Shown: in pieces, positions 16,648 through 64,000 of the stretch
Layout of the letters: each line of letters opens with the position of its first letter
Position numbering within the stretch: the first letter of the stretch is position 1
From: Rebecca billardiae RCC1528
Taxonomy: Eukaryota > Protista > Haptophyta
NCBI GenBank assembly: GCA_965240325.2
Contig: OZ251255.1
Span: 372,001-436,000, forward strand
Length of the DNA: 64,000 nucleotides
Reading direction: 5' to 3'
Position numbers and translations under genes: made by a program
The notes under the pieces: model-generated
What the model was told of the DNA's origin: nothing
Databases searched by the model: none
The model's input: the letters and a program-made list of their open reading frames with translations, nothing else

Positions 16648-17992
16648 ATGCTCACGTCGTTCGCTCTCTGCGCAGCGCTGGCGTTCAGCGGGCCGGCGGT
16701 CCGCCCGGCGACGCGCTCGTCGCGCGTGGTGGTGCGCATGGAGGACGCCGCGGCGCCCCCGGCCGAGGAGGCGCCCGCGCCCCCGCCGCCGCCGCCGCCG
16801 CCCAAGATGTCGCCGTCGGTGCCGTTCCTGCAGATGCAGCCGGCTCTGGCGGGCATGGTGGGTGAGGAGGTGGCGTTCGATCCGCTCGGCCTCTCGAGCG
16901 CGTTCCCGATCGACTGGCTGCGCGAGGCGGAGCTCAAGCACTGCCGCGTGTGCATGCTCGCCACCCTCGGCTTCGTCGTCGCAGAGTTTGCCCACCTGCC
17001 GGTGCGTGCTGCCCCGCGCGCCGCCGCCGCGCGGGCGGCTTCCGCGCGAGTGGGGCGGCGTCGGTGGCTGCGTGGCGCGGGTCAGGGCGCGGGGGCCGTT
17101 GGTTTGCGGCTGGTCCGTGTGCTCGGAGACGGGCCGCGAGCAAGCGTCCGTGCCCACGGCTGGCCCTGCCCCAGCCGCGCGCGGGCGGCGAGGTCGGCTA
17201 GACTCGCATGCGCCGCGCGTGGCCTCCAGAGCACCGCGCCTGCGCGCGCGCACGCGCCCTGCGCCGCGCTCACCGTGCCCCGCGCGCCCGCGCGCGCCGC
17301 GCGCCCGCAGGGCCGTGAGTTCACCTCGGTCGCCGCGCACAACGCCAACCTGGAGACGGGCGCGATGACCCAGCTCATGATCTGGATCTCGCTCGCCGAG
17401 ATTGTCTCTGCGGTCGCGGTTGCGCAGATGATGAACGGCAGTGGCCGGAAGCCGGGCTACTTCGGTGCGTCGGCGCGTGCGCGGGGTTGTGGGTGGGCGG
17501 GCTGGGCGCGGAGCACGCCGGCGCGGTGGGTCGTGCTGCCCCAGCCGCGGCGGCGCACGGCGAGGGCAGCGACGCGCGGCCGCGTCCCGTCGGCAGGCGG
17601 TGCGGTAGTCGCTCACGCGCGGCCTAGCGCCTTGGGAGGCGGTTTCGGGGCGCCGGGCGCTGTCCGGGGCATCGGCAGCCGCACGCGCGGGGCGTACGCA
17701 CCTCGCGGCATGCCCGCGCCCCGCCCGCCGCTCGCTAACCCGCCGCCCACCGCCCGCCTCCCTGCATCTTCCCCGCCCCTCCTCGACGCCTACGCCTACT
17801 CGTACTCCTCGTGTTCGTCCGCTGACGCGCGCGCGCGCAGGCTTTGACCCGTTGAAGTTCTGCAAGGACGAGGCGTCGACCAAGAAGATGGAGCTGGCCG
17901 AGCTCAAGAACGGCCGCCTGGCGATGCTCGCGTTCTCGGGCATGGTGACGCAGGCGGCGCTCACGGGCAACGGCTTCCCGTACCTCTACTAG
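16648..17992 (+). CDS. LHCR: Light-harvesting chlorophyll a/c-binding protein, probably Lhcr-type, with bipartite plastid-targeting peptide
   Basis: Exons 16648-17001, 17311-17464, 17841-17992; [48 protein letters not shown]; N-terminus [14 protein letters not shown]. Confidence 0.95.
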
Positions 17993-23642: not shown

Positions 23643-24199
23643 CATGGCACTGGTGCCAACTGCGGGTTCCTTGCGGTACTGGGCGTCACCCGCGCAGGGG
23701 CCCGCGAAGACCCAGCAGGGGCAACCAGGAGCGCCCAGGCACTGAGGCAAGCCACCGAGTACAGCACGCCCTGTCCCTGAGTGCGCAGCACCAGGGGGTC
23801 CTGGCGGCCGCAGTGGCCCCCCAGCCGGCCCACCTCGAGCCCAATGGGAGCGCACAGAGGGCAGCAGCAGCGGCTGCCACCCTGGGCACGGTTCGAGAGG
23901 CTGGCACCCCGTTGGCAGATGCACTCCTCCCCTGTGTGGCAGCAGGGGCGAACACCACAGTCGTCCTGGTCACCAGAGACCCTCACACCGGCGCCCCTCT
24001 TCGTATGGTCCAGGTCTTCCACAGCCCAGGCTCCCCCCAGTACAACCGGCACGACCCGCTGCACATTGAGGTGCTACCCTGGCCCCAAGTGGCCACCAGG
24101 CTGGCAGCGGGCGCACTCGGACAGACCAGGGTCATCTCTCACTGGAGAGGCCATTACAGGACCACAGTCCCAAGGGCACTGCCAGGTCAGGCCCACTGA
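23643..24199 (+). pseudogene. Frameshifted OTU-like cysteine protease fragment inside a 1.5-kb insert (23644-25160)
   Basis: HGTGANCGFLAVL...SAQALRQAT, frameshift near 23757, VQHAL...LLPCVAAGANTTVVLV...VISHWRGHYRTT: Cys-loop, LR helix and His-loop in OTU order. Confidence 0.6.
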
Positions 24200-24384
24200 G
24201 GCCACTGGCCCGCAGGCAGAACTCAGGCTGGCCAGAGGCCCCTGCTGGGGTGAGGGTGGGGGAACTGCCCAAGCGCCGGGGGGGGGGGGGGGGGGGGGGG
24301 AGGAGGAGGACCGGAGCTCAACCAGAACCACCAGGCCCAGCAGAGACACGACCATCCCCCACAAGTACCGGAACCAGTCCCCGA

Positions 24385-24822
24385 CGGCGAGTCCAACTAC
24401 TACTAACTTCGGCGAGTCCAACTACTACAAACTTCGGCGAGTCCAACTACTACTAACTTCGGCAAGTCCAACTACTACTAACTTCGGCGAGTCCAACTAC
24501 TACTAACTTCGGCGAGTCCAACTACTACTAACCTCGGCGAGTCCAACTACTACTAGTAACCTCGGCGAGTCCAACTACTACTAACTTCGGCGAGTCCAAC
24601 CACTACTAACTTCGGCGAGTCCAACTATATATACTACTAACTTCGGCGAGTCCAACTACTACTAACTTCGGCGAGTCCAACTACTACTAACTTCGGCGAG
24701 TCCAACTACTACTAACTCAGGCGAGTCCAACTACTACTAACTTCGGCGAGTCCAACTACTACCAACTTCGGCGAGTCCAACTACTACTAACTCAGGCGAG
24801 TCCAACTACTACTAACTTCGGC
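24385..24822. repeat. 25-bp minisatellite, 17 units
   Basis: Unit CGGCGAGTCCAACTACTACTAACTT, head-to-tail, no spacers, a few variant units. Confidence 0.97.
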
Positions 24823-27269
24823 CACAACATCATCCACCAGCTGCTGACCAAGAACAGGCTACACCATCGTCCACCATGACCTGCCACTGACCAAGTAGGC
24901 GACGACATCATCCGCACCAGCTGCTGACCAAGTAGGGGACGGCCTGGCCGACGCCAACATGCTCACTCGCCTTTGATTTCGTACCCATGCACTTCCTGGT
25001 GGGCCTGACGACGTCCGGACGACGACAACAACGACATCCGCCATGGGGACCAACATCAACGCGCTCACACCACTGCCACTGCTGCAAGCTTCGACCAGTA
25101 CCACTACAGACGAATCAGGAGAGCTGCGCCCTCGTGCCTGTGTCTTTAAATCATAGAATTGGTCCGCAGTGGCTGAGCCCGGTGGCAGCCATGGACAGGT
25201 CGCACGGGTGCCGCGGCGTGAGGTCCTGCGGCCGTGGCGTTGCCTATGGCGGGCGGCGCGGTGCGCGCGCGGCTGCAAATGCGTGGTATACTCCACTCTG
25301 CGCTGCGCGCCTGCCCGCCCTCGTCACCTCCTTCGCGCCTGAGGCTGGCGCGCACACGCGCGCCGTGCCGTTTGAGGACGAGAGCTTGCGCACGCGCACG
25401 ACGAGGTCGGTGCGGAGCGCGAGCAGGCATGCAGTGGGCCGTGTACGTCCTCTACACACGCCGTGCAACCTCCCGCCTTGCGTGTGCGCATAGCCAGCGA
25501 TCTCAGCGCAGGCAGGCAGTTGAGTGCATGCATACCGCAGGCGCGTGCAATCTGGTCGGCTCAGCGTGTAGGCGGCCGCTGTGGGAGACATCAGCATCTC
25601 AAGTGCGCTGGCTCACTGCCAGTAAGCGCGCTTGCACGCTGATGTGAGTCCGCACACGCATCCAAACTGTGTGAACACTGGGCCCAGTGCACACTACGGT
25701 ACAGGCAGGCACGCAAGTCACTAGCTGCGCCAACATGGGCTGGGCTGGCGTTACGCGTCATGCCGTCACGAAACGTCATGTCATGACGTCATGGCGTGAC
25801 GCTAGGAATGGCGTCACGTGACGGCCGGACAGTGCTCTGTCCACGTCTGGCACTCCCGGAACCACGTAGTCCGTGCACTCGGGGCTGATAGCGCGGCGCG
25901 CGCCAACCGGCGGGATGCGCCGGCGCCGCGCCGCCGGCTGAGGCAGGGCCAGCCGACCCGGGGTCAGGAGAGAGCGCGGCTACTGGCTGCGGGAGTCGTT
26001 GCGGATGAATACAATAGCACCATTGCTTCCCGTAGCAGTGGCAAGCCGGCCCCCGCCGGATCAGCATGCAGGTAGCATCTGCACGTTAAGCGCTGAGGTG
26101 TGCGCAGCGGCGTGACATGTAACCTACGACGACATGTAACCGACGCGAAACGGTCCCCACTAGAGTGCATATCGGCATAACGTGTAAAGTACACGTAAAA
26201 CGCGTTACGTCGTCATGACGTGACAACAGAGATGCGCGTCATGACGTGTATTGGCCTACTAGCCTTGGCTCCTAAGATGCTGTGTGCTCCGCTAATCTGA
26301 AAGGCGGGTGGGGAGTCCGGCACTGGGACTGGCTGCACGTATTAAACACCTTCCAAGGCATGGTGCTGCATGTACACCAGTAGCGCGGGCGTCCATCACA
26401 ACTCACAAGCCAGTCCAGTCTAGTCGACTTCTAGTACCGTCGGCGGCTCTAGACCGCAGTCATGTTCCGACGACAGCCGCCGCCGGCAGCAGTCGGAGTG
26501 TAGAGTATTGAACATTCGGACCGTCTAACTCGTAGTCGCTATGCAGCAGACTTGCGTTAAAGGTTGCCAAGAGGCCCCATCTCGTGCAGCAGCCGCCCAC
26601 GACCACGACCGACAACCCATATGATTATCCCCAACATTGCCACGCACATGCCCGCCAGAGTAACAGGCTTACCCTTGTTTCCTGCGAGTGGCGGCGGCAG
26701 TCAGCCAACAAGTGATGAATGACTTTCATCTGAGATCGCTGGCTATGCGCACACGCAAGGCGGGAGGTTGTACGGCGTGTGTAGAGGACGTACACGGCCC
26801 ACTGCATGCCTGCTCGCGCTCCGCACCGACCTCGTCGTGCGCGTGCGCAAGCTCTCGTGGCTCAAACGGCACGGCGCGCGTGTGCGCGCCAGCCTCAGGC
26901 GCGAAGGAGGTGACGAGGGCGGGCAGGCGCGCAGCGCAGAGTGGAGTATACCACGCATTTGCAGCCGCGCGCGCACCGCGCCGCCCGCCATAGGCAACGC
27001 CACGGCCGCAGGACCTCACGCCGCGGCACCCGTGCGACCTGTCCATGGCTGCCACCGGGCTCACCGCTCAGCCACTGCGGACCGGGTGCACCCCGCCGAG
27101 CCCGGCTTGGCACGCGACTTATTTTCCTATTCAGATCGACTGTCGTGGACGCGCGGCTCTTAGAGAAAGAAACGCTCGCGGAAATATAGGCTTATGTCGC
27201 CGCCCGCCGACCTAGCGGCGAGCAGCTCCGGCAAGCGGCAGCCGCGGCTGTCGCCCGCCCGCCTGCGCC

Positions 27270-50522: not shown

Positions 50523-51436
50523 TGTCTGATGCTGCGTGAAGCGTGATGGGCAGTAAGTTAGGCGAGTCAGGCCGTCGGCCTGCTTCGCCTCGCACTGGCC
50601 ACTGGGCACTGGCGTCAGATCCGGGAGCAGACGTCGAGACGCGAGACCAACGCGCCGCCCTCGGGCGGTCAGGGCGGCTGGGTCACGGGCCGCGTGCCCG
50701 CCGGCTATGCGCGGTCGCAGCAGACAGACCTAGCGCAGTGCTGCAGTGCGGTGCACGACACGACGATTAATAGTGATCCTGCCGAGCTGGCCGCTCCTGA
50801 CGACCCCGCGCGAGATAGGCATCATATATATATATATATATAAGCAGCTAGCTAGCATATACAGCATACATCGTCAGCTATTATTATTATATTATATATA
50901 TATTGATTGTCGTTCATCACGACCGGCCTATATATGTATAGCTAGCTAGCAGACCATAGAGGGGTCAGAGCCCCACTGGGCGGGGGTGCGTGGCCCAAAA
51001 TCCACACAGTGAACAAAAACGGGATTATCGTTAGGGAAAACCCCGGAAGTCCGACGAGGACCGACCGAGCAACCAGAACTCCGACAAACCTCCGCATCTC
51101 AGCACGGCGATTTCCGGACTGGCACCCCCGCCAGTTTTCCGACGGCCAGAAGCTTCGGGAGCGAGCAAATGGCGCCGCTCGCCCGCAACGCGGAAGATAC
51201 CGCTCGCGGCGAACCGGCGCGAACGCCCGCCTTGTATTCGGGCGGAGTACCCTAATGAGCGGGGGTGGGTACTTTCGTATTGCGCGCAGCCTGACGCCCA
51301 CCCGCGACGAAACGACGCCGTCGACTCCTCCCGCCCGGACCGCCGCCGGAACGTTGCTCGTCAATTAGTTAGAGAAATGCGACGCCGGGGGGCGCGCCGC
51401 AAAACTTGCTCCCGAGCTCGCCACGAGGGACGATCG

Positions 51437-54400
51437 ATGCCTCGCACGACGTTAAGGGGGTACGCCTGCCACGCGCGCGGGCGTCGTGCGCGCGCCGCGT
51501 GGTCGCGCGCGGCGCATCGCGCGCGCGTGTGTCTTCGTTCGCGCGCGCGGCGTGCGCTCGCGCATGTCGTCACGCCGTGCGTTCTGCGTCGTTGCGCGGC
51601 GTCGTGCCCGCGTGCCGCGCGCAGGCCGCCGCCGCCTGCGGGGACGACTCCGACTGCGACGAGCTTCGCGAACGGGGCTGCTGTGGACGTGGTGTACGAG
51701 CAGGGTGCACCGGCAGTCCGTGCTGTGGTCGCGGCGCTTGGGGTCGGCGCACACGGGCGAGTGCAGACGTACGTCCTCCGGGCTGCCGAGGGAGTGTCTG
51801 CTCATGCGTGGGCTGCGGTCCCTGGCGACACCGTCGGTGCGTCCGCGGATGGAACAGTCGAGGGCGCAGGCTCGTTGAAGAGGGTGCCAGCGGCGCACGT
51901 GCGTGCGCCGCCCGCCGGCGAGCAGTGCGCCGAGCAGGGGCAGGGCGCCGAGCAGGGCGCCTAGCAGGGCGCCCTGCTCGGCGCCCTGCTCGGCGCCGAG
52001 CCGGGCGCCGAGCAGGGCAAGCAGGCCGCCGAGCAGGGCGCCGAGCCGGGCGCCGAGCCGGGCGCCGAGCAGGGCGCCGAGCAGGGCGCCCAGCCGGGCG
52101 CCGGGCAGGGCGCCGGGCAGGGCAAGCAGGCCGCCGAGCAGGCCGCCGAGCCGGGCGCCGAGCAGGGCGCCGAGCAGGGCAAGCAGGGCGCCCAGCCGGG
52201 CGCCGGGCCGGGCGCCGAGCCGGGCGCCGAGCAGGGCAAGCAGGCCGCCGAGCAGGGCGCCGAGCCGGGCGCCGAGCAGGGCGCCGAGCAGGGCGCCCAG
52301 CCGGGCGCCGGGCAGGGCGCCGGGCCGGGCGCCGGGCCGGGCGCCGAGCAGGGCAAGCAGGGCGCCGAGCAGGGCGCCGAGCAGGGCGCCGAGCAGGGCG
52401 CCCAGCCGGGCGCCGGGCATGGCAAGCAGGCCGCCGAGCAGGGCACCGAGCCGGGCGCCGAGCAGGGCGCCGAGCAGGGCGCCCAGCCGGGCGCCGAGCA
52501 GGGCGCCGAGCAGGGCGCCGACGGCCGGCCGGCCCGCCACGGCAGCACGCGCGTGGGCGGCGGCAGCTACGCCGCCCAGGGCATCCAGCAGGAGGCTGCG
52601 GGGCAGCGCGGCGCGCAGGGGGCGGCTCACCACAACGGGCGCGGCGGCGTGCGGACGCGGGCCATGCGCCGCCAGCCGCCACGTGCGCCACCCGCCGAAG
52701 CGCTGCCCGGCGTCACCTCGGCGCCGACGGCGCCGCCGTCGGCGCCGACGGCGGTCGCAGGCGTCACGGCGGCGCCGGCGGCGCCGCCTGCGGCCGCCGG
52801 CGGCCCCGCGACAAGCGACGAACGCGCCGAGCCGCCACGCGCACCCGTCGCAACGCTGGCGCCGGCGCCGGCGCCGCCGCCGGCGCCGACGGCGGTCGCC
52901 GGCGTCACGGCGGCGCCGGCGGCGCCGCCTTCGGCCGCCGGCGGCCCCGCGACAAGCGACGAACGCGCCGAGCCGCCACGCGCACCCGTCGAAACGCTGG
53001 CGGGTGCCACCGGCGTCACCGCGGCGGCGCCGGCGCCGCCGCCTGCGGCCGCCGGCGGCCCCGCGACGCGCGCCGAACGCGCCGAGCCGCCACGCGCACC
53101 CGCCGAGGCGCCGGCGGCTGCCACCGGCGTCACCGCGGCGGCGCCGGCGCCGCCGTCGCCGGCTGCGGCCGCCGACGGCCCCGCGGGCGTCAACTCAGAT
53201 GACTCCGGTGGTGCTGCCTCGGGCGAGGTGGCACGGGCGGCGACGGCGTCGACCGCGACGCGCGCCGAACGCGCCGAGCCGCCACGCGCACCCGCCGAGG
53301 CGCCGGCGGCTGCCACCGGCGTCACCGCGGCGGCGCCGGCGCCGGCTGCGGCCGCCGACGGCCCCGCGGGCGTCAACTCAGATGACTCCGGTGGTGCTGC
53401 CTCGGGCGAGGTGGCACGGGCGGCGACGGCGTTGATGGGTGGAGCGGCGGCTGGCGCAGCGGGGTCGCACTCCCATGCACCACAGCAGGCGCCCGCCGCC
53501 GCGCAACCCGGCGGTGGCGGCCACGCGGACGACGGCGGCGGCGTCTACGGCAGCGGCGACGGCGGCTCACGCGAGCTGTTCGCGATGAGCGATGTCTTGC
53601 AGCACGTGGATCATTTCTTCAGCGGCATCTACGGGAAACGCCGGAGGTTCGGCGGAGACACGCCCGCCGCGCCGGCGCAGGCGCACGCGCACGTGCTGGT
53701 GCGCCCCAGCGCGGTGGCGGATGCGGACGCGCGGACGACGAAGCACGGGCCGCAACCGAACAACGGCCGATTGGTGCCGGCCATCCTCAGGTTCAACCGC
53801 GCGTTCGCGTCACGGCATCTCGGCGGCGGCGGCGGCACGGTCCGCGTGGTGAACGTGGTGTGCGATGCCACGAACAACAAGCACTTCGGCGTGCTCACGG
53901 ATGCCGACGCTGTGCGCGAGCTGTGCGCCTCGGGCGCCTTGTACACGCGCAGCGAGGTGGGCGATGCGGTGCGCGAGTTCTACGCCGGCGCCGCCGCGAG
54001 CGTCGGCGGCTCTGTCTCTGAGCTCGCCCTGCGCGCAGCAGGCGAGCACTTCGGTGTGCACGGCCCGTTGCCCTACGTCCTCGACGCGGACGTGCGAGTC
54101 GCCTTAGCGGACGCTGAGGCCGACGACGATGGCGTCGCAGGCGGCGACGCGCCCTGGGTTCACCGGGCGCTTGCGTTGCCCTCGATGCGGCGCTCGGGAC
54201 AGGCGGTGTTCGGCCTCCCCGCCGTGGTTGCACAGGCGCCCTCCTGGTGCGCGCTTGTGCCCACGCCGCTGCGGGCGCCCGCTGAGCAGGGGACGTCGCC
54301 TTTGCTGCACGCCGCCGTGGCCGTGGTGGACTACCGGTCCGTGGACACCGACGACACCGACGAGTCGGAGCCCGTCGTCGGCGCGCACGCGTACGCCATC

Positions 54401-56514
54401 CGCTTCGAGAAGGGCTGGCGCCTCCTCACCTTCGCCACGCGGCCGCCCAGTGGTGCGGCGGGCGCGATGACGGCTGCGACGTGCACGGACCTCACGGTCG
54501 ACGCCTTCGCCGCCGCCGTCAGCCGGCGTGAGGTTGCTGCGTGCGAGCTGCAGTCAGCGCCGCCGCGGGCCATTGCGCCCCCCGTCCAGCACGCCGCCCC
54601 CGCGCTCCACGACTCGCCGCCCAGCCCGGACGAGACGGACGCGTTGCCGCCCCGCCCGCGCCGGGACGTGGTCCCGACGTCCACGGACGTGCTCATGGGC
54701 GCCTCCGCGGTGTGCAGCGCGCTCGGCATCGGGCCATGCCATTGGGCGCCCGATGGCGACCCGCCCGGGCTCATGACGAACGCCGCGGCCATCGCGGAGG
54801 CGGCGCTCACGTACGTGCAGTCGAACTACGACGTGATTGGGGGCACGGCGGCGTCGGCGGACCTGCTGCACACGCTCCACCAGATCATGGTCGCCGGCCG
54901 CCCGCAGCGCTCGTTTGACAGGCCTCTCCCCCGGCCGGGCGGTGGGACGCGCGTGCGCGTCGCAGGCGTCGTCGGCGAGCTGCCCGTCCATGAACAAGAG
55001 CTGATGCTCGCCTCGAAGCACACGTGCGTCGCGGCGGCCATCGCGTGCGCCTCGGCGCTCGTGCTGCGCGTCAAGGCGGCACACCTGCGATACGACGCCC
55101 TCGCCGACGTCAGCGTGGGCGATGGTGCGTCCTTCGAGGCGGCGGACTACCTCACCAAGGTGCGCATCGTCAGCGCACGGCTCGTCGCGCCCGAGCGGAA
55201 GAAGCGGCTCACCTTCGAGCTCCTCGCCGTCTCCGAGGATAACGCCGGTGCTTACGACCGCGTGCTCAACGCCGACACGAGCTCGCGGGCACTCCACCGG
55301 GACGAGGTGCTCGAGTTCACCTACGTGCCTTCGAAGACGCGCTCGTGGAAGTCGACGGAGGCGCTGTCAACGCACAGCCGCGCGGCGGCCGGCGACGACG
55401 CCGACGCCGGCAACTTCGGCACGCTGTTCTTCGTCCCGCACATGCGCGACCCCGTGAAGGCAGCCGCCCTGGCGCGCCCGCCGCCTGCCGGGACGCCACC
55501 TGCCGCGCCGCCCGTGGGTGCGATTGTGGACTTTCGCCCCTTGTGCATCAGCGTGTGGGCTGACATCGTCCCGTTCTGCCAGGATCGGCTCTGGACGCAC
55601 CCGGCGGACCCAGTCACCGGCAAAAGCAGCGGCGTGGACGCGCCGAAGATGTACGCCGCCGCGCTCCACAGGCGCGCGCCCTCGCTGGCGCGGCACGTAC
55701 AGGCGGCGCCAGCGCGCAAGCGTCGCCTGAACGAACGCGGCGCCGACGCGGGCGGCGCGGGCGGCGCCGCCGGTGGGCGCGTGGTGGCGCGCCGGCCGGT
55801 CGGCGACCCGGGCCGCGTCGCCGTCACACGGCCATCCGCCGTCGCGCGCGCACCCGGGCCACCCGAACAGGCGACGCGCATGTGCACCGAGCTCGCTGCG
55901 GCCCACGCCCAGCTCGCTGAGATGGTGCACGGCATCCCCAACGCAATGGCACAAGCGATCGGACAACTCGCTGCGAACGACGCCAAGCGCCAGAAGGAGT
56001 ACGAGGCCTGGCGCGCGGCGGACGACGACCGGCGCCGGCAGGAGCGCGCGGCGGACGAGGCCTGGCGCCAGCAGGAGCGCGCGGAGGCGGCGCGCCGACG
56101 CGACGAGGATCGCGCGGCCGCAATGAAACGTGACGAGATCGCGAGCGCGATGGTGGCGTCTATGCAGGCGTTGACGCAGTTCATGATGGACCGCAGCGCA
56201 GGTGGCGCACAGCCCGGCCCGCACGCGTCGGCGCACGCGGCGTGCGTCCAGCTGCCAACAGGCGAAGCACCGCACGGCGCGCACGCCCCGGCTGCGGGCC
56301 CGTCGGTGAGCGCTGCGTCCGCTGCGCCCACGTCGCGCGCACCCACGGCACGGCGTGGCGCGCCGCCGCCGGTCGCATTCGGCCAGCGCGCGCGGCGCCG
56401 AGTGCCGCCCCCTGACTCGCGTGTGCCCGCCAGGCCGCTGCACTGTCGCTCCGTGCGCCGGCCGCGCAGGCCGACGAAGCCCCCGCGGGCCAGCCCCCGC
56501 CGGCCGCGCAGTAG
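51437..56514 (+). CDS. Accessory gene (~1600 aa): small beta-rich N-domain, EQGA repeats, Ala/Pro repeats, possible degenerate Ulp1-like folds, coiled coil; one in-frame TAG at 51962
   Basis: Predicted exons 51437-51459, 51625-56305, 56434-56514 (phase-compatible GT-AG introns, CTGAC branch point at ~56412); ORFs 51377-51964 and 52553-57070 share one frame. Confidence 0.65.
51920..52520 (+). repeat. 12-bp coding minisatellite (GAGCAGGGCGCC; EQGA/EPGA)
   Basis: ~50 variant units; two units inverted at ~51971-51996. Confidence 0.95.
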
Positions 56515-57066
56515 ACGCCGACCCACAAGGGCGCGTCCTGACGTGCCCACGCGCCGCCCACAGGTGCGCGCACACACCACATCGGGCGGCGCCAGCCGTG
56601 CGCACGCCGAGCGGCGTGTACGCGCAGCCCTGGCTCAGTCGCGCCCGACCGCCCCCGTGCGCGCGCGCGCGTCGCGGTGGCGTGCACAGGCTGCGCGCCA
56701 CCCGGGGCGGCCACGCGGGTGGCCGCCACCGCTGGCAGCATCTGGCCACGAGCTCGGCACCCGGGGTGCCGGCGGAGTGGCTCGTCGGAATCGCCGTGGC
56801 CTGAGCCCGGTTCTCCGAGCACACGGCCACAGGCACCCCCCCGGCCAGCGCCTCTGCGCCACTCGCAGTGACGGCGCCACAAGGGCCTACGGCGGGGCCC
56901 GCCGAGAAGGTCTTAGCGCAGGTCTTAGCGGCATGCAAGCAGCGCCACGCGCGACAACACTGATACACGCCGCCGGGGGCCCACACTGTGCCGGCCCGTG
57001 CTATGTCGTCGTCAGCTCGGACGCAGGCCGGCCGGCCGGTGCCGTGAGTCGGCGCCTGTCGTTCTG

Positions 57067-60000
57067 TTAGCTGGCACCTGGCGTGCTCAGGCGGCGTGGT
57101 GCGCACTCAACGTACCCCTGCAAGGGTGATGTAGCTCGCATGAAGTGCGCCAGACGCCCCTCGTTGTTGTCGCGCGCCGAACGCGCCTCCAGGGGCGCCG
57201 TCGCCGACACCACCGCGCCGAAGTGGCAACGGCCGTCGTACACCACGGCCATCCACGTCGTGCCCAACTGCGTGACGTCCAGACGCTGCAAGGCGCGCCG
57301 CGTGCGCTCGTCACGCAGGCGCAGGTGCGCATGCGTGCTCACTGCGACGCTGCCCTTGCGCCCGCCGTCGTCAGTCCGCCGCCAGCGAAGGCCCGGCCGC
57401 GTCTGCACGGGGTAGAACCAGACGTTGTCGGTGAACGCGCGCCACGCCGCCTCCTCCGGCGTAGCCCCGCCGCGCAGCTCAAGGACCACCAGCGGCAGGC
57501 CCGTGGCGCGCGCCGTCGCGACGTGCGAGCCCCACGCCGACCACGCACCAGCGCGCGCCGCATGCGCGCCAGCGCCGTCGCCCGTGTACCGGGCGCCGCG
57601 CGCGTACGCGCGCGCCGCTGCTCCCAGCGTCCGCACGCCTCCAGTATGTCGCAGTGGCAGTGGCAGCACCTCCTGCCAGTCCTCGTCCTGCACTTCGAGT
57701 CCTTGGCCGGTGCGGGCCCGGGGGATGGATGCTGGCTTGACGCCAAGCATGCCGAGCGCGCTTGCCGCCGACGCCGTGGCCGACGCCGTGCCGAGCGTCT
57801 CGCCCGGTCCGTGCTCGTCCTCCCACGACGCGATGTACGAGCACACGCCGTCGCGCAGCGTCTGCGCGCGCGCGTTGGCGGCGGGCAGGTCGGCCCGCAC
57901 GCCACGCGTGTCGTGCGCGAGCCACGCGTGAAAGTAGCAGTCGCCATCGCCGGGAACGTCCTGCACGCTCGTGCCGCCGCCGAAGAGCTCGCGGATGGCC
58001 GCGGCGACGTTGCCGTCGCCATCCACGCCGCCGGGTGCTCCGGTCTGTGCACCAGCCCGCGCCTCGGGCGGCAACGCCGGCGGCAGGGGCAGCACGGGGA
58101 AGCCCAGGCGCTCGAGCAGGACCGCGGCGTCGTCCACCGGCGCGTGCACGTGTGCGGCGGCCGCCGGAGCCACCGCAGCCGGCGCAGCCCCGTGCCCGGC
58201 GGGCGCCGGCGCCGCCGCACCCGCGTCCACGGTGGCGTCCGTCGCCGCCGCGGCGCGCGGCGCGGCTGCGCCGCGTGGCGCGGCATCACCCGCCGTCACG
58301 TCAGCGCGGCATCGCTCCGCCGTCACGTCAGCGGCGGTCTCGCCCAAGGCCAGGCGCAGCCCCAAGCCCACGTCGCACCGCCATGCCCCGTCGGAGCCGT
58401 CGAGAGGGACCACCTCGGTGCCGAACGCGCTCGGGTCCAGCGCATCCACCTCGCACCCGCGCCGCCTGGACGCCAGCCTCACGTGCGCGTCCGCAGCCGG
58501 CTGGAACGCACTCCAGCGCGACGCCGGCAACACCCCGTGCGCGCGCGGGGTGGCCTGCGGCGCAACCACTGCGTAGAACTGCCGGCGAGGACACACGTTG
58601 CGCACGATGGCCACCCAGCCGGTGCCCATCGCCCCGACGTCGAGCGTGCGCAGGACGCGTGCGTGCGTCTCGCGTCCCAGGCTCAGGCGCGCTTCGCACA
58701 GCGGACGTGCGTCCGCGTGCGCGGCGCCTGCGTCGGGCGTGTCGGCGCGCCGGCGCTTCGCGCCGGCGCCCCCGCGAGCGCGTGGCGCCGCCGGCGCCGG
58801 CGGCACGCGCACTGCCGTCGGAGGATACCACCGCACGTGCTCACGCATGGCGACGCCGTGCACGTCGCGAGCTCGGCGTGCGTAGGCCATGTCGAAGACG
58901 AGGAGGTGCACGCCGGCGGCGCGAGCGACTGCCGCGTACCACTCAGGGCCATCGCACGTGTTGCCCGGGCTGCTGACGTACCCGTCGCACGTGTACTCCG
59001 CCGCTCGCGCTGCCAGCGTCACTGCGTCGTCCAGATCGCGCACGCGCTGGCCGGGGCTGTGCCACGACGACGAGTCGTCGGGGGCCACCATGCGCAGAGC
59101 CCGCAAACGCGCCTGCCCAGCTTCGTCGCCACCTGCGCTCTCCGGGGGAAGTGCGCGCACGTCAGCGCCGCACAAGCCGATGAAGCGCGCCTGCGCTCGC
59201 AGGTCCTCTGCCGACTCGGCCGGGCCCAGCGCGCCACCCCAGCCGACGGAGTGCTCGGTGGGCGTGGCATGCGCGTGCGCGGCCAGCCACGACGCGGCCG
59301 CCGCGCGCAGGCGCCGCGCGCAGCACGCCCACCACAGGGCCTCAAGCGTGCTGGGCGGACGCGCCCGCGCGTGCGCGTGCGCGAGCACCGCGTGCAGCAC
59401 GTCGTCACCGTCGGCTGGCACGGGCAACGGCTGTGCGGCGCCCGCGCCCCAGAGGTCGTCGAGCACTGCCTGGGCGCAGCAGAGCCGTAATCGGGCGAAT
59501 TCGGCGTCGTGGTCGTCTGCGCCGGCGGCGGCGTCGGCGGCGTGGAACAGGCGCACCGGCGCGTGGCGGTCATCGCCCGCGGCGCGCGCTCCAGCGTCGC
59601 GCACCGGCAGACCAGTGCGCGCCAAGTGGGCGACCGCGTCGTCCGCGGTGGCGACGGCTGTGTCGTCCGCGGCACCAGACGTGCCACGCGCCGTCCCCAG
59701 CAGGTCGGCGCCTGCGCGCGTTGGGCCCGGCGTCGGCACCGACCGCGCCGCCGACGATGGCCCCGCCGTGGACGCGCGGGCGCCCGCCGCCTGGCGCGAA
59801 GCCGGCGGCAGGCGCCCATCCGCGGCCGCACCGCCCGCGTCGTCGGCGGCGGCCGCAGTCCGAGGGCGCTTGGGCGCGCACGGCGCAGACGCGGCCCCCG
59901 CGCCCGCGCGGGAGGTGCCAGCCGCGGCGCCCGCCTGGCCTGCGGCGCCTGCGCCCGCGCCGCCGCCGCCAGCCAGGACGTCCGCCAGGCCCGCCGCCGC

Positions 60001-63000
60001 CGCCGCGACGTCGTGTGCGCCTGCGTGCGCCCACACGTGGGAGGCCGCGTTCGGAGCGGCGCCGCCCGAGCCCCTCGCGCCGCCACTGCCCTCGGCGGGC
60101 ACGGCGGGCGACGCGTGCGCGCGCGCCAGCTCGGCGGGGGCGGCGGCGGCGCGCGCAAACTGTGCCAGCACCTTGCCCGTCGTCGCGCTGGACGCGCCGA
60201 ATGCGTCACCGGCCGTCTCGCTGAGCGTGGGCCACGGTGCTGACAGGCCGCGACTGCACATGAACATGGCTGCCCTGCCCCGACCGATGCCAGGTATGCG
60301 CTGCAACGCCGCGAGCACTGCGGCGCTGTCGTCAGCGAGGCGCGCGTACGCCGACTCGGACTCCGCCGCCTCCGCCGGTGGCTCTGCCGCGCCCGCGCGC
60401 GCCCGAGGGACTCGCGCACCCGGTGGCGGTGGCGCGTGGGCGCCGGGCCACGGGGGGCGGAAGGGATGCTCAGTCGCCGCCAGCGGTACTGTGTCGCCCG
60501 TGGCCGGCAGCGGCTCCGCGGCGTGCGCGCGCGCGCGCGCGGCGGGCGTCGTGCCGGCGTCCGCGCCACTGCGCGGGCCCGTCGTGCCCTCAGGCGGTGC
60601 GGCCGGCCGCTGCGTGGCGGCGTTTGGCATCGGTGCCGTCGCGAAGCCCATGCGTACGCCGGTGCCGCCAAGTGCCTGCGAGGCGATCGCGCGCGCGCAG
60701 TGCCGGCGCGGGCCGCCGCGCGCGCCCGCGCCCGCCGCGGCGGCGCCGTCGCGCGTCTGGGCGGCCGCCGGCTGCGCGCGCCCGGGCGCGGGCGCCGCCG
60801 CGCCGCGGCCCCCGCGGCCGCCTGCGCGGCCCCCGCGCGCGCCTGCGGTGCGCGCGGGGTCGCCGCGCGCGGCCCCACCGCCGTGCTGTCCGCGCATACG
60901 GTGGTATGGCACGTCCTCCGGCCTCGCGCCGCGCGGCCCGTCGGGCGCCGCCGCCTCGCCCGCCGCGGCTGCGCGCGCTTCGCGCAGGCGCTTCCACGCC
61001 CCCGCGACGAGCAGGAAGTAGCAGCACGTGCACATGTACAGCCCGCTGTCCAGCGCGCCGAGGTGCCACACATACTTGCACTGCGCGGGCGAGTGGATGA
61101 AGCAGGCGCAGCCCTGGCACGCCAGTCGGGGGTCGATCGGCGGCGAGTCCGCCGGCCACGCCGCGCTGAGGTCCGCGGCCTCGGGGTCGAAACACGCGCA
61201 GCAGCGCAGTTGCGCGGCGGCGGTCGTGCCGGCCGTGTACGTGGCAAAGTGGCGACGTCGCTGGTTCGCAACCACACCCTCGCGGAGCGGGCCGGCCACG
61301 CGCACGAGCACGTTAGTGTCGTCGAGCACGTGCGTGTGCGCGATGCCGTACAGGTGCTCCGGCAGCCCCTCGAGCACACGCGCGAGCTCGTCGCGGTGCG
61401 CTTCGCGCACGCGCCGGGCGAAGTCGCCGTCCGGGGCTTGCTCCCTCAAGGGGCGCACGTACGACGCCGCGGATTTGCCCAACTGCACGCGCGGCGCGCG
61501 CGCGCGCGGTGCGCGCGGGTGGCGCGCCCCGGCGCGGCCCTCCCAGAACGCCAGCCGTCGCGCCGAGGACGCGGGCCTGCCCACGCGCGCGGGCACCGCT
61601 GGCATGGCCACGTACTTTTCGAGCAGGGCGCGCTTGGCGAGAGCGGGCAGCAGCAGAGCCGCAATGGCGTCCTCCAGGCGCTGGGGCGGTGTGATGACGT
61701 CGAGCTTGGTGATGGCCACGACGCGCCCGAGCGTGTCCACCCGGGTGTCGTTGGCGTCGCGCTCGACCCGAAGGCCCACCTGCGCGAACCACGTCTCGCA
61801 GCGCAGGTCCTGGGGCAAGCACGTGCCCATGGCACGGCCGACGGAGGTCGCCACGCGGCAGAAGTGCATGCACGGCAGGCGCTTGCGGCGCAGCAACGCG
61901 CAGCACCGGAACTCGTCGAGGTACACGTGGCGCGGCGCCGAGCCGTCCGTGGTGTTGAGCATGCGCAGGGCACCTGCGTGCGGCCCGTCGAGGACACGGT
62001 GCACTTCCACCTGAGAGAGCGTGCGCGCCGTGCTCACCTGCTGGCGCACGTATTCCAGGTGCCGTGGCGGCAACCCGTGCACCTCATCATCGGCGTCGGG
62101 CTTCAGGGCGTGGCGCACGGCGACGCTGCGGTGCGTCGCGTAGAGGCGAAAGAGGTTGTCGTGCAGGTCGAGCAGCATCCACACCGGGCCCTGCGCCTTG
62201 CGCACCGGCAGCAGCCAGTGCATGAAGGACTCCGCCGGCGCGGACGTCACGTAGCCGCGCAGGGACACCGGCGCGAAGCACGGGAAGAGCTCCTCGCGGG
62301 GGATGACGTCGAGGATGCGCTTGGCCGACTCTGGCATCTCCACCCAGGCGGCCTCCCACACCTCCTCGGTCAACGCGTCCACGCACGCGTCGAACACGCG
62401 CAGGATGGTGGGCACCTCGTTCGCCGAGTGTGCGTAGCCCGTGATGAAGGTCTGGCGCTTGTGGAACGTGCACAGGAAGAGGTGCCTGCGCGGGCACAGC
62501 AGCTTCCACGCGCCGCGCAGGCCCTTCTGGCCGTCCGAGATGGTGACGCCGTTGGGGTCGTCCCACACAGCCGCCCCGCCGAGGTGCTGCATGAGGTATC
62601 CGACGTGCGCGCACCACGAGTCCAGGCACTCCACGTCGACGATGTACGACACGCACAAGACGAACAGCTGCCGGTTGGCGTTCACGGCCAGCGTGACGAA
62701 GAGCATGCCTGCGTCGCGCGCGTGCGTGCGCGCGGGCAGGTCAGACGGGCGGGCGCTGAGGCGGCACGGACGCACGCGGCGTCGCGAGGGCGTGCCCGGG
62801 TGCGGCGGGCGCGCGCACCCGCGCGCTTCGCGCCACCGCTGGCGGGGCGGTGCAGGAAGCACGCGTCGCTGAACGCGGCCGTGTTGCCCTTCGCGTGAAA
62901 GTGCTCGCGGTAAAGCGCCTTGGCCTGCTTGGGCACGTAGTGGAAGCCACCCACTGCCTTCTTGCCGCGCACGTCAGCCAGCGCCTTCTGCACCTCCGCC

Positions 63001-64000
63001 GCGTCGGGGTTGAAGGCCGCGCGCTGCGCGCCCGCCGGCAGCCCCTGCTGCACCTCGTCGTGCACGCGGCCGAACATGGCCAGCAGCGCGTCCTCGACCG
63101 AGTTCTCGTGGAAGATGATGGGAGCGACCTCGTTGCCCTCCTGCGACAGCGACGCGCACACGGCCACGAGGTCGCGCGACATGGCCGTGTCGTCCCCGTA
63201 GATCTCGGCGCGCGCTTCTTTGTGCGCTCGCGCGATGAGCGATTCACCCATGGGGAGCTCTGCGTCCAGCTGGCGCGCGACCTCTCGTGCTTGCTGCGGG
63301 CCGTAGCACAGCTGCGCGTGCGTGGTCCCGCGCCGGGCCAAGCGCGCCTTCCAGTCCTCGACGATCGCCCGCCCGAGCTCGTGTTGGGAGTACGGCGTCG
63401 TGCGCACGCCCGGCTGGTTGGTCGGGCGCGGCAGCGAGCCGATGGGGTGTTCCTCGGACCCCTTGCCCATGCGCAGGTTGCGGCACATGGAGCCGTGCGC
63501 GACCGAGCGTTGCACGGCCCACGGCGGCGCGCCAAACGTGTCCACGTACTTCGACGGGCCCACCACCACCACGGACGGGCACCCGGGCGTGGGGCATCCG
63601 ATCGTCAGCTTGGCGCGGTCGACGCGCCGCGTCGGCGGCATGGCCCCCCGGTGCAGCGCGCACTCCAAGGCGTGCGTGAGCGCGTCGGCGAGGCGCGGGT
63701 ACACCTGGCGCACCATCGGGGGCTCGAGCAGGGTGGCGTCCGCCTTCACCTGGGAGTACGGGCGCGGCGCCCGCAAGCCCATTTTCCTCCACAGTGCCAG
63801 GGGCCGGAGCTCGAGGCGGTGCGCTGCCGCCGACGTGCTCGCCGAGGTGCTCGACGGCGCGGAGTAGCGGAAGTACCCGGCGTCACCGCCGTGGTGCAGC
63901 GACTCCGGCGCAACAAGCCGGGCGCCGGCCTGGCCGGCGCGGGGCTCGGCGGGACCGGTGGAGGGCGGCTGCGCGCGAGCGACGATGGGTGGACACGGCA
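57067..64000 (-). CDS. MULE (MudrA-like) transposase fused to SWIM, PHD-like, HhH and tandem OTU domains; 5' partial
   Basis: Zn-finger CPTPGC..W....AHGSMC; intron 62818-62709 gives FSDACFL..GMLFVTLAVNANRQL, ISDGQKGL, LCTFH, TSAPAESF (DDE); SWIM CC..RLPCMH; frame open to the window edge. Confidence 0.93.

Follow-up and report, generated by a model that had tools for sequence, protein, structure and literature searches.

A 64,000-nucleotide stretch of DNA from the haptophyte Rebecca billardiae RCC1528 (contig OZ251255.1, positions 372,001 to 436,000 of the forward strand; hereafter the window) carries most of an autonomous Mutator-like element (MULE) of 17,763 bp that has moved very recently. 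In our preferred reading, to which we assign a probability of roughly 0.6, this element encodes a giant transposase that ends in a dead duplicate of an OTU domain followed by a divergent OTU protease. An initial annotation, made from the sequence alone, had taken window positions 57067-64000 as a unit in which a Mutator transposase was fused to a PHD-like finger, a helix-hairpin-helix (HhH) motif and two OTU-like repeats. The limits of that unit had to be redrawn: the complete element spans window positions 51032-68794 (contig C39:423032-440794), its right end lies 4.8 kb past the end of the window, and the start of the gene is not in ORF B, the long open reading frame (ORF) that contains the repeats.

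The borders of the element were obtained from its copies. A DNA search of the alga's own 72-Mb assembly recovered the 3' part of the element in ten full-length copies with 99-100% identity, and BLAST comparison of the 20 kb around each of these ten copies delimited a shared unit of 17,744-17,791 bp that is 99.4-99.8% identical between them; the part inside the window occupies 51032-64000 on the minus strand. The element ends match each other in inverted orientation over 491 bp with 97.1% identity (BLAST), which places a 3' terminal inverted repeat (TIR) of about 490 bp at 51032-51522 and its partner, outside the window, at approximately 68305-68794. The termini read GGGAATCC...GGTTTTCCC. Perfect 9-bp target site duplications (TSDs) surround seven of the nine full copies, the copy in the window being flanked by TAACGATAA; Mutator and MULE insertions typically generate TSDs of 8-11 bp.

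The TSDs are AT-rich, with 0-3 G/C among their nine positions, in a genome region of about 71% GC; those of the present copy lie at 51023-51031 and 68795-68803. Three copies, on contigs C22, C5 and C35, occupy one and the same 9-mer, TACAGTTTA, within a repeated and partly palindromic target. Two others, on contigs C10 (L014/L024) and C12 (L013/L023), have no matching TSDs, and the left flank of the C10 copy, TAAAGTCAT, is almost identical to the right flank of the C12 copy, TAAAGTAAT; this likeness suggests either that copies have exchanged sequence or that the assembly was joined at this point. Next to the 3' TIR, dense subterminal tandem repeat arrays extend over 51919-53432 with units of 12/105 bp and then 141/183 bp (Tandem Repeats Finder and BLAST self-matches), and their length differs from copy to copy.

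The predicted MULE catalytic core lies on the minus strand at 62218-62879. It comprises a first Asp within FSDACF (62856-62879), a second within ISDGQKG (62521-62541), a CxxH motif (62461-62472) and the Glu of PAESFMH (62218-62238), and it is matched, below threshold, by the Pfam MULE family PF10551. Because this match and the D / D / CxxH / E motifs coincide with long TIRs and 9-bp TSDs, we regard the element as Mutator-like and recently mobile. The initial annotation of a Mutator transposase with an intact DDE core and a SWIM finger is thus correct as to a real, recently mobile MULE, but the first Asp belongs to the frame of another ORF (ORF A, below) and SWIM can be retained as a motif only: the CC...C-x-H pattern is present at 61858-61905 on the minus strand, as annotated, and Pfam gave no match to the SWIM finger PF04434, also when a 50-residue piece was scanned. 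Word-index protein searches with the transposase and its Cys-rich 601-residue piece, long candidates included, returned no homologue, and a PDB sequence search with the transposase core returned chance-level matches only. Upstream of the core, a C-x4-C...H-x3-C motif without a Pfam match was recognized by eye at 63483-63596 (minus strand), the position at which MULE transposases carry a WRKY/GCM1-type DNA-binding finger (PMC1702500).

Beyond the catalytic core the frame does continue for the great length originally claimed for it. ORF B (minus strand, 62862-57070) runs for 1,931 codons with zero stops, and each of the nine fully examined copies has it intact, whereas at its GC content of about 78% stops are expected approximately once per 90 codons and a frame of this length would arise by chance with a probability of about 1e-9. 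The shorter open frames, of 700-800 codons, in other registers of this DNA are of the kind that commonly accompanies a gene rich in third-position GC. Three long frames, ORF A, ORF B and ORF C, are common to the nine full copies. ORF A has 1,790 codons, of which the last 440 are in the window (62819-64000, minus strand), and continues to about 68054, 4 kb past the window edge; it overlaps ORF B in a different frame, ORF A supplying the first catalytic Asp and ORF B the remainder of the MULE domain. No Pfam match was found in ORF A. An H-x-D ... H pattern occurs near its residues 760-835, outside the window (L021:3685-9054, minus strand), where Pfam reports nothing.

The two frames can be connected by a candidate phase-1 GT-AG intron at 62709-62818 on the minus strand, recognized from splice sites that restore the frame. 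Its donor would be G/GTGCGC or, 18 nt upstream, G/GTGGCG (extending the intron to 62836), and its acceptor GACGCAG/G, with CAG/G at 62709/62708 (slashes within sequences mark the junctions). Cutting out the corresponding 110 or 128 nt restores the frame, and either donor joins the first Asp to the remaining MULE domain. We infer that ORF A and ORF B are joined by this single 110-128-nt GT-AG intron into one gene, whose predicted protein would have approximately 3,590-3,600 residues if only that one intron is removed. The last exon of the transposase gene (57067-62708, minus strand) then consists of 1,879 codons plus a TAA stop at 57067-57069, and is stop-free in all copies. Over most of both OTU units the codon positions follow the coding pattern GC2 < GC1 <= GC3.

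At the end of this gene, the domain at 57208-58131 on the minus strand (ORF B residues ~1578-1885) is assigned to the OTU-like cysteine proteases by four concordant weak lines of evidence: a sequence profile, protein-language-model features and two structural comparisons. The second of the annotated OTU-like repeats was said to keep its catalytic residues, and it does: Asp1639, Cys1642 and His1880 are all present, with the Cys codon at 57937-57939 and the His codon at 57223-57225, and the repeat motifs VPGDGDC (57922-57957) and CHF (57208-57234) are where they had been placed. OTU proteases have a D-G-x-C motif where a helix begins and a C-terminal His on a beta-strand; the corresponding Cys loop, DGDC(1642)YFHA, and CH(1880)F motif are also kept in P0001, the single homologue found outside this genome (see below). 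A profile built from the C-terminal domain, its internal duplicate and P0001 was compared with PDB sequences; its best three matches were two nairovirus OTU domains and one bacterial OTU (E 0.02-0.07). The Cys loop VPGDGDCF.H matches nairovirus and bacterial OTU structures exactly, being identical over 10 residues to the nairovirus OTU, and a weak second match follows in the right order over a W..GV..vv segment; the significant part of the PDB match is a 14-residue motif. Protein-language-model (atlas) features gave a score of 0.93, with 186 of 256 features common to PF02338 clusters and OTU domains among 60 of 100 matches.

The structural comparisons point in the same direction. When an AF2 model of the domain was compared by Foldseek with 350,542 chains, the top 25 matches were all OTU, as were about 40 of the top 50. 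VIA-align, which works independently of Foldseek, was run against 48,161 representatives; its top 50 matches include eight OTU chains (Z 3.4-4.5), aligned over 126-154 residues and each covering most or all of the model, whereas most other matches concern its helical middle only. The OTU matches of both methods include the C-terminal His strand. From these results we conclude that the C-terminal domain is a predicted, very divergent OTU-fold cysteine protease. Two further candidates were examined and rejected. Recent capture of a host OTU gene is contradicted by the absence of all 14 host OTU loci from the element and by the invisibility of the element's domain to Pfam; and a link to a "second OTU fragment" at window positions 23644-25160 found no support, since tblastn with both OTU units detected nothing there.

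The first OTU-like repeat had been described as lacking catalytic residues, and it proved to be a true duplicate of the second. This pseudo-OTU (58564-59640, minus strand; ORF B residues ~1075-1433) contains the motifs VPADGDDV (59386-59421) and RRQF (58564-58587) at the positions originally annotated, is homologous to the C-terminal domain (BLASTP E 4e-6, tblastn 5e-5) and can be aligned with it over its whole length, with the catalytic Cys replaced by Asp1154 and the His by Gln1428. Its history can be read from a sister MULE family present at three loci of the same genome (C13:2399414-2402953, C24:1210477-1214016 and C27:994628-998167), which is 66% identical to the present family over the 601-residue transposase and Cys-rich block and 34% identical over the OTU. 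At the C27 locus the transposase and OTU matches fall in the same frame of one 3,254-codon ORF, about 245 residues apart, and the sister family retains the transposase, the HhH block and one OTU with its Cys and His intact in a single frame. It has no pseudo-OTU, as the pseudo-OTU query matches only inside that family's single OTU.

Outside this genome, an exhaustive HMMER search of 1.84 billion representative proteins yielded one match, P0001, and word-index protein searches with tail residues 1070-1931 yielded nothing. PHROGs gave no match either. P0001 derives from a 3-kb Logan contig and contains the HhH block followed by one OTU with Cys and His, its frame remaining open upstream to the contig end. 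Because the sister family and P0001 both carry a single OTU, the pseudo-OTU would be a lineage-specific duplicate. That the transposase-HhH-OTU fusion has persisted across such substantial divergence speaks for a functional role of the OTU within the protein. Among the copies of the present element, non-synonymous and synonymous changes number 11:2 in the pseudo-OTU, 7:2 in the linkers, 2:3 in the transposase core and 3:3 in the C-terminal OTU; these counts are very small (Fisher's test, p 0.05) and weakly suggest that the pseudo-OTU is free of constraint. The pseudo-OTU region (58543-59460, minus strand) is also the most variable protein segment, two copies being 97% identical there as against 99-100% in the core and the live OTU.

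Several observations weigh against the preferred reading, the first group of which concerns the identity of the domains. PF10551 scores E 0.0038 and 18.1 bits, below its cut-off of 27.6, over ORF B residues 51-134, which are encoded by the exon without the first Asp. The Pfam OTU family (PF02338) gives no match at E <= 10 to the C-terminal domain, to P0001 or to the duplicate, and a six-frame scan of the genome with the same family found 14 host OTU genes, none of them within the MULE copies. The AF2 model of the OTU domain, built on a 3-sequence alignment, is poor (pLDDT 42.5), and no fold match is individually significant, the best Foldseek E being 0.36 and the best VIA-align OTU Z 4.5. Some OTU families have an Asp or Asn two residues after the catalytic His. 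With Gly at the corresponding position here, an acidic triad member could only be supplied by the Asp at position -3 relative to the Cys. Only one homologue is available from outside the genome, and hence no deep alignment. A sceptic could hold that the OTU likeness is misleading and that the domain has another papain-like or an unrelated fold, a short D-G-D-C motif being all that it has in common with OTU proteases, pointing to the silence of Pfam, the 14 residues that make up the significant part of the PDB match and the low confidence of the model. We consider this very improbable, as profile, atlas, Foldseek and VIA-align all converge on OTU, including the second ordered match and the C-terminal His strand.

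A second group concerns the unity of the gene. None of the public RNA runs checked for the region contains it, and neither a single transcript nor the intron was observed in them; the one public run in which the sequence occurs is made up of short contigs of DNA type that are almost the same as the window, show no joints and carry no information on transcripts. Codon periodicity is absent from the Ala/Gly/Pro-rich linkers (residues ~640-830, 920-1070 and 1520-1575), which could conceal in-frame introns. One might accordingly regard everything past the Cys-rich block as hitch-hiking or captured sequence, or as a separate gene, in a frame that has stayed open only through youth and high GC. All copies are less than 0.6% diverged, so that their shared open frame proves little, and GC3, about 0.95 in the core, is lower in the tail (about 0.85), which together with the aperiodic linkers and the absence of the region from the RNA runs checked speaks for this account. 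It nevertheless appears improbable to us: the sister family, at 34% identity in the OTU and 66% in the core, still unites transposase, HhH and OTU in one frame and preserves the Cys and His; 1,931 codons without a stop greatly exceed what chance would yield at this GC; and the domain resembles no host OTU gene at the level of Pfam, and so was not recently captured.

Between the core and the OTU units lie the two modules for which the initial annotation was most specific. The Cys/His-rich cluster (61021-61203, minus strand) is indeed at the position given, with the pattern C-x2-C-x24-C-x2-C-x4-H-x4-C-x15-C-x2-C, that is, eight ligands with a first loop of 24 residues, the last pair being preceded by an aromatic residue. 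Canonical PHD fingers have H-x2-C spacing, whereas the cluster has H-x4-C. Its interpretation as a PHD-like chromatin reader obtained no backing: neither Pfam, nor the PDB sequence search (chance-level matches only), nor the atlas protein-language-model features gave any support for PHD (PF00628). In the fold modelling, the OTU model retrieved OTU structures throughout its top 25 Foldseek matches (all at E >= 0.36), and the model of the Cys-rich piece (pLDDT 41) found no match in the fold search. Since the cluster belongs to the 601-residue block shared with the sister family at 66% identity, we take it as a probable functional extension of the transposase that binds zinc.

The HhH-like motif LQRIPGIGRGRAAMF (60262-60306, again where it had been annotated) is part of a conserved block at 60049-60345 on the minus strand, delimited by a weak Pfam match and the alignment to the homologue. 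Pfam HHH (PF00633), whose motif is h-x-x-h-x-G-h-G-x-x-x-A, matches at exactly the expected residues, with E 0.053 and 13.8 bits against a 24-bit cut-off, and the block aligns to the N-terminus of P0001 with E 6e-7, the GIG of the motif being GVG in P0001. The annotated motif is thus in place and within a conserved block, although its Pfam score remains below threshold, and from its sequence the identification as HhH is plausible.

These modules had been combined into a proposal in which a PHD reader, an HhH DNA binder, a ubiquitin-binding pseudo-OTU and an active OTU form an anti-silencing or targeting device, for instance by erasing histone ubiquitin. The Cys/His cluster does resemble C4HC3 and is conserved with the sister family, the HhH is weakly detected and conserved in P0001, the OTU domain is supported, and PHD fingers are known in some Mutator and Ginger1 transposases (PMC2836005, PMC1702500). 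The absence of any PHD signal in Pfam, PDB, atlas or fold search and the H-x4-C spacing all count against such a device, as does the lack of evidence for any chromatin target. For a ubiquitin-binding role of the pseudo-OTU we likewise found no evidence: the sister family does without this domain, and the changes in the pseudo-OTU among the copies of the present element (11 non-synonymous to 2 synonymous) look neutral. An anti-silencing or targeting system of this kind is therefore speculation, and we rate it as a distant outsider among the explanations considered.

The preferred reading, a giant transposase with a terminal OTU protease, implies the following order of modules in the predicted protein: a long N-terminal region, a putative WRKY-like finger, the MULE D-D-CxxH-E core with its SWIM-like motif, the Cys/His-rich extension, low-complexity Ala/Gly/Pro linkers, the HhH-like block, the dead OTU duplicate and the C-terminal OTU with Asp-Cys-His. 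Judging from its family membership, the transposase part would cut and paste the element. The OTU would be carried along with the transposase as an active isopeptidase or protease and, in the manner of viral OTUs and of the Ulp1 or OTU domains borne by other transposons, may strip ubiquitin or a ubiquitin-like modifier off the transposase itself or off nearby repair or chromatin proteins at the site of excision or insertion; it may additionally cleave the linkers of the polyprotein. The pseudo-OTU is most likely now a spacer or in decay. A bolder version of this scheme, in which the OTU units form a deep transposon-specific lineage and the dead duplicate binds ubiquitin for the live domain to cut, the pair acting with the Cys/His and HhH modules in counter-defence by removing ubiquitin marks from chromatin or repair factors at the element ends, seems to us a long shot.

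The protease might instead act mainly in cis, processing the ~3,600-residue polyprotein into an N-terminal module, the transposase and a tail in the way known from viral OTU-like and papain-like proteases, with deubiquitination secondary or absent. The exceptional length of the protein and the separation of its modules by Ala/Gly/Pro-rich linkers would suit such a role, and the linkers contain RGG and L-x-GG strings, with one LRGG at residues 1796-1799; yet RGG strings are expected by chance in low-complexity sequence, the sole LRGG lies inside the OTU domain, and neither products nor sites of such cleavage are known. The OTU domains that have been characterised are for the most part isopeptidases. 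Processing is on the other hand the very role that Babu et al. proposed for the MULE-OTU fusions of Medicago (PMC1702500). We hold it to be a tentative and rather unlikely account of the main function of the domain, and one that is compatible with our preferred explanation and not exclusive of it.

On the opposite strand, the element contains a second, convergent frame. ORF C is open over 51965-57067 and has 1,701 codons in this copy and 2,013 in most others; its coding-like core, recognized from codon-position GC, is confined to 53500-56290 (plus strand), where GC3 is 0.87-0.92 against a GC2 of 0.49-0.64, and the periodicity is gone outside that stretch. Pfam gave no match in ORF C, which includes a charged coiled-coil-like stretch near residues 1340-1390. 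Its TAG stop (57068-57070) overlaps the TAA of the transposase gene (57067-57069, minus strand). Elsewhere in the window, a host light-harvesting gene at 16843-17968 (plus strand) is marked by two exon-sized matches to PF00504, the chlorophyll a/b-binding protein family; the assembly has more than 40 loci of this family, as befits a photosynthetic eukaryote.

Transposon proteins have repeatedly gained proteases for ubiquitin-like modifiers, namely Ulp1 in MULEs, OTU in Ginger1 and Helitrons, and VTD in Helentrons. The closest design is that of the MULE transposases with a C-terminal OTU-superfamily protease described in Medicago truncatula by Babu, Iyer, Balaji and Aravind in 2006, a study that also reported MULE transposases with a C-terminal PHD finger in Ciona and C. 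elegans (PMC1702500). The Medicago proteins share with ours an N-terminal WRKY/GCM1-type finger region and a C-terminal papain-like protease of the OTU superfamily, and some of their relatives have a Cys/His finger after the core. Unlike them, the present protein belongs to an algal host, not to a land plant or animal, has approximately 3,600 residues and an OTU too divergent for Pfam, carries a dead tandem duplicate and an HhH-like block before that OTU, and has a single metagenomic fragment as the only relative found beyond this genome.

Ginger1 transposases contain OTU, Ulp1 and PHD domains, and Mutator transposases Ulp1 and PHD (Bao, Kapitonov and Jurka 2010; PMC2836005). As in our element, a cut-and-paste transposase is there followed by a C-terminal OTU or Ulp1 protease and sometimes a PHD finger; for these proteases a role in transposition, or in the subsequent activation of DNA repair, was suggested, as was a link with the ubiquitin pathway or DNA repair (PMC2836005). 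Ginger1 differs in its Gypsy-integrase-like DDE, in element lengths of 2.6-7 kb, in an OTU seen by pfam02338 and in having one protease domain each. KI-MULE/Kaonashi and VANDAL20-type MULEs of plants and animals (cited in PMC2836005) likewise combine a Mutator element with a papain-like protease for ubiquitin-like modifiers, but theirs is a Ulp1/C48 protease, in many plant elements encoded by a separate gene; Pfam found no Ulp1/C48 (PF02902) in any frame piece of the transposase gene or ORF C.

Helitron and Helentron proteins with OTU and/or VTD deubiquitinase domains (Erven et al. 2022, PMC9741609; PMC6431247) resemble the present one in being very large, in carrying one or two deubiquitinase-type domains (two tandem VTD domains in zebrafish DrT1) and in keeping the catalytic residues in autonomous copies; these elements move, by contrast, by a rolling-circle mechanism with a RepHel protein and have no DDE transposase. 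VTD activity has been shown experimentally and no transposon OTU domain has been tested for activity; the Helitron VTD was proposed to shield transposition proteins from proteasomal degradation, and a similar deubiquitinase activity was ascribed to the Helitron OTU (PMC9741609). The nairovirus L-protein OTU (PDB 7y5m, 3phu, 6oar) provides the closest match to the Cys loop, VPGDGDCFFH, and is also a domain within a giant multifunctional protein of a selfish element. It differs in its N-terminal location in an RNA polymerase. The nairovirus triad has an Asp two residues after the His, where the algal protein has Gly, and nothing points to a shared ancestry of the two other than that of the OTU superfamily.

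As to the novelty left open by the initial annotation, the element family was not found described in the literature searched, Repbase being outside that search, whereas MULE-OTU and MULE-PHD fusions as such have precedents (PMC1702500, PMC2836005). The family offers a clean and apparently active system in a small algal genome, with ten intact, near-identical copies in which a live and a dead OTU lie side by side, and the sister family with its single OTU is a natural comparison. At 17.8 kb and ~3,600 residues it illustrates the size that a cut-and-paste element and its transposase can attain, and its OTU, being invisible to Pfam, will be missed by standard annotation. The general design, in which MULE transposases are combined with OTU or PHD domains and deubiquitinase domains occur in tandem, is already known; what is new here is an alga as host, the dimensions of element and protein, a Pfam-invisible OTU nearly without relatives among 1.84 billion representative proteins, the pairing of a live with a dead OTU, and the HhH-like block.

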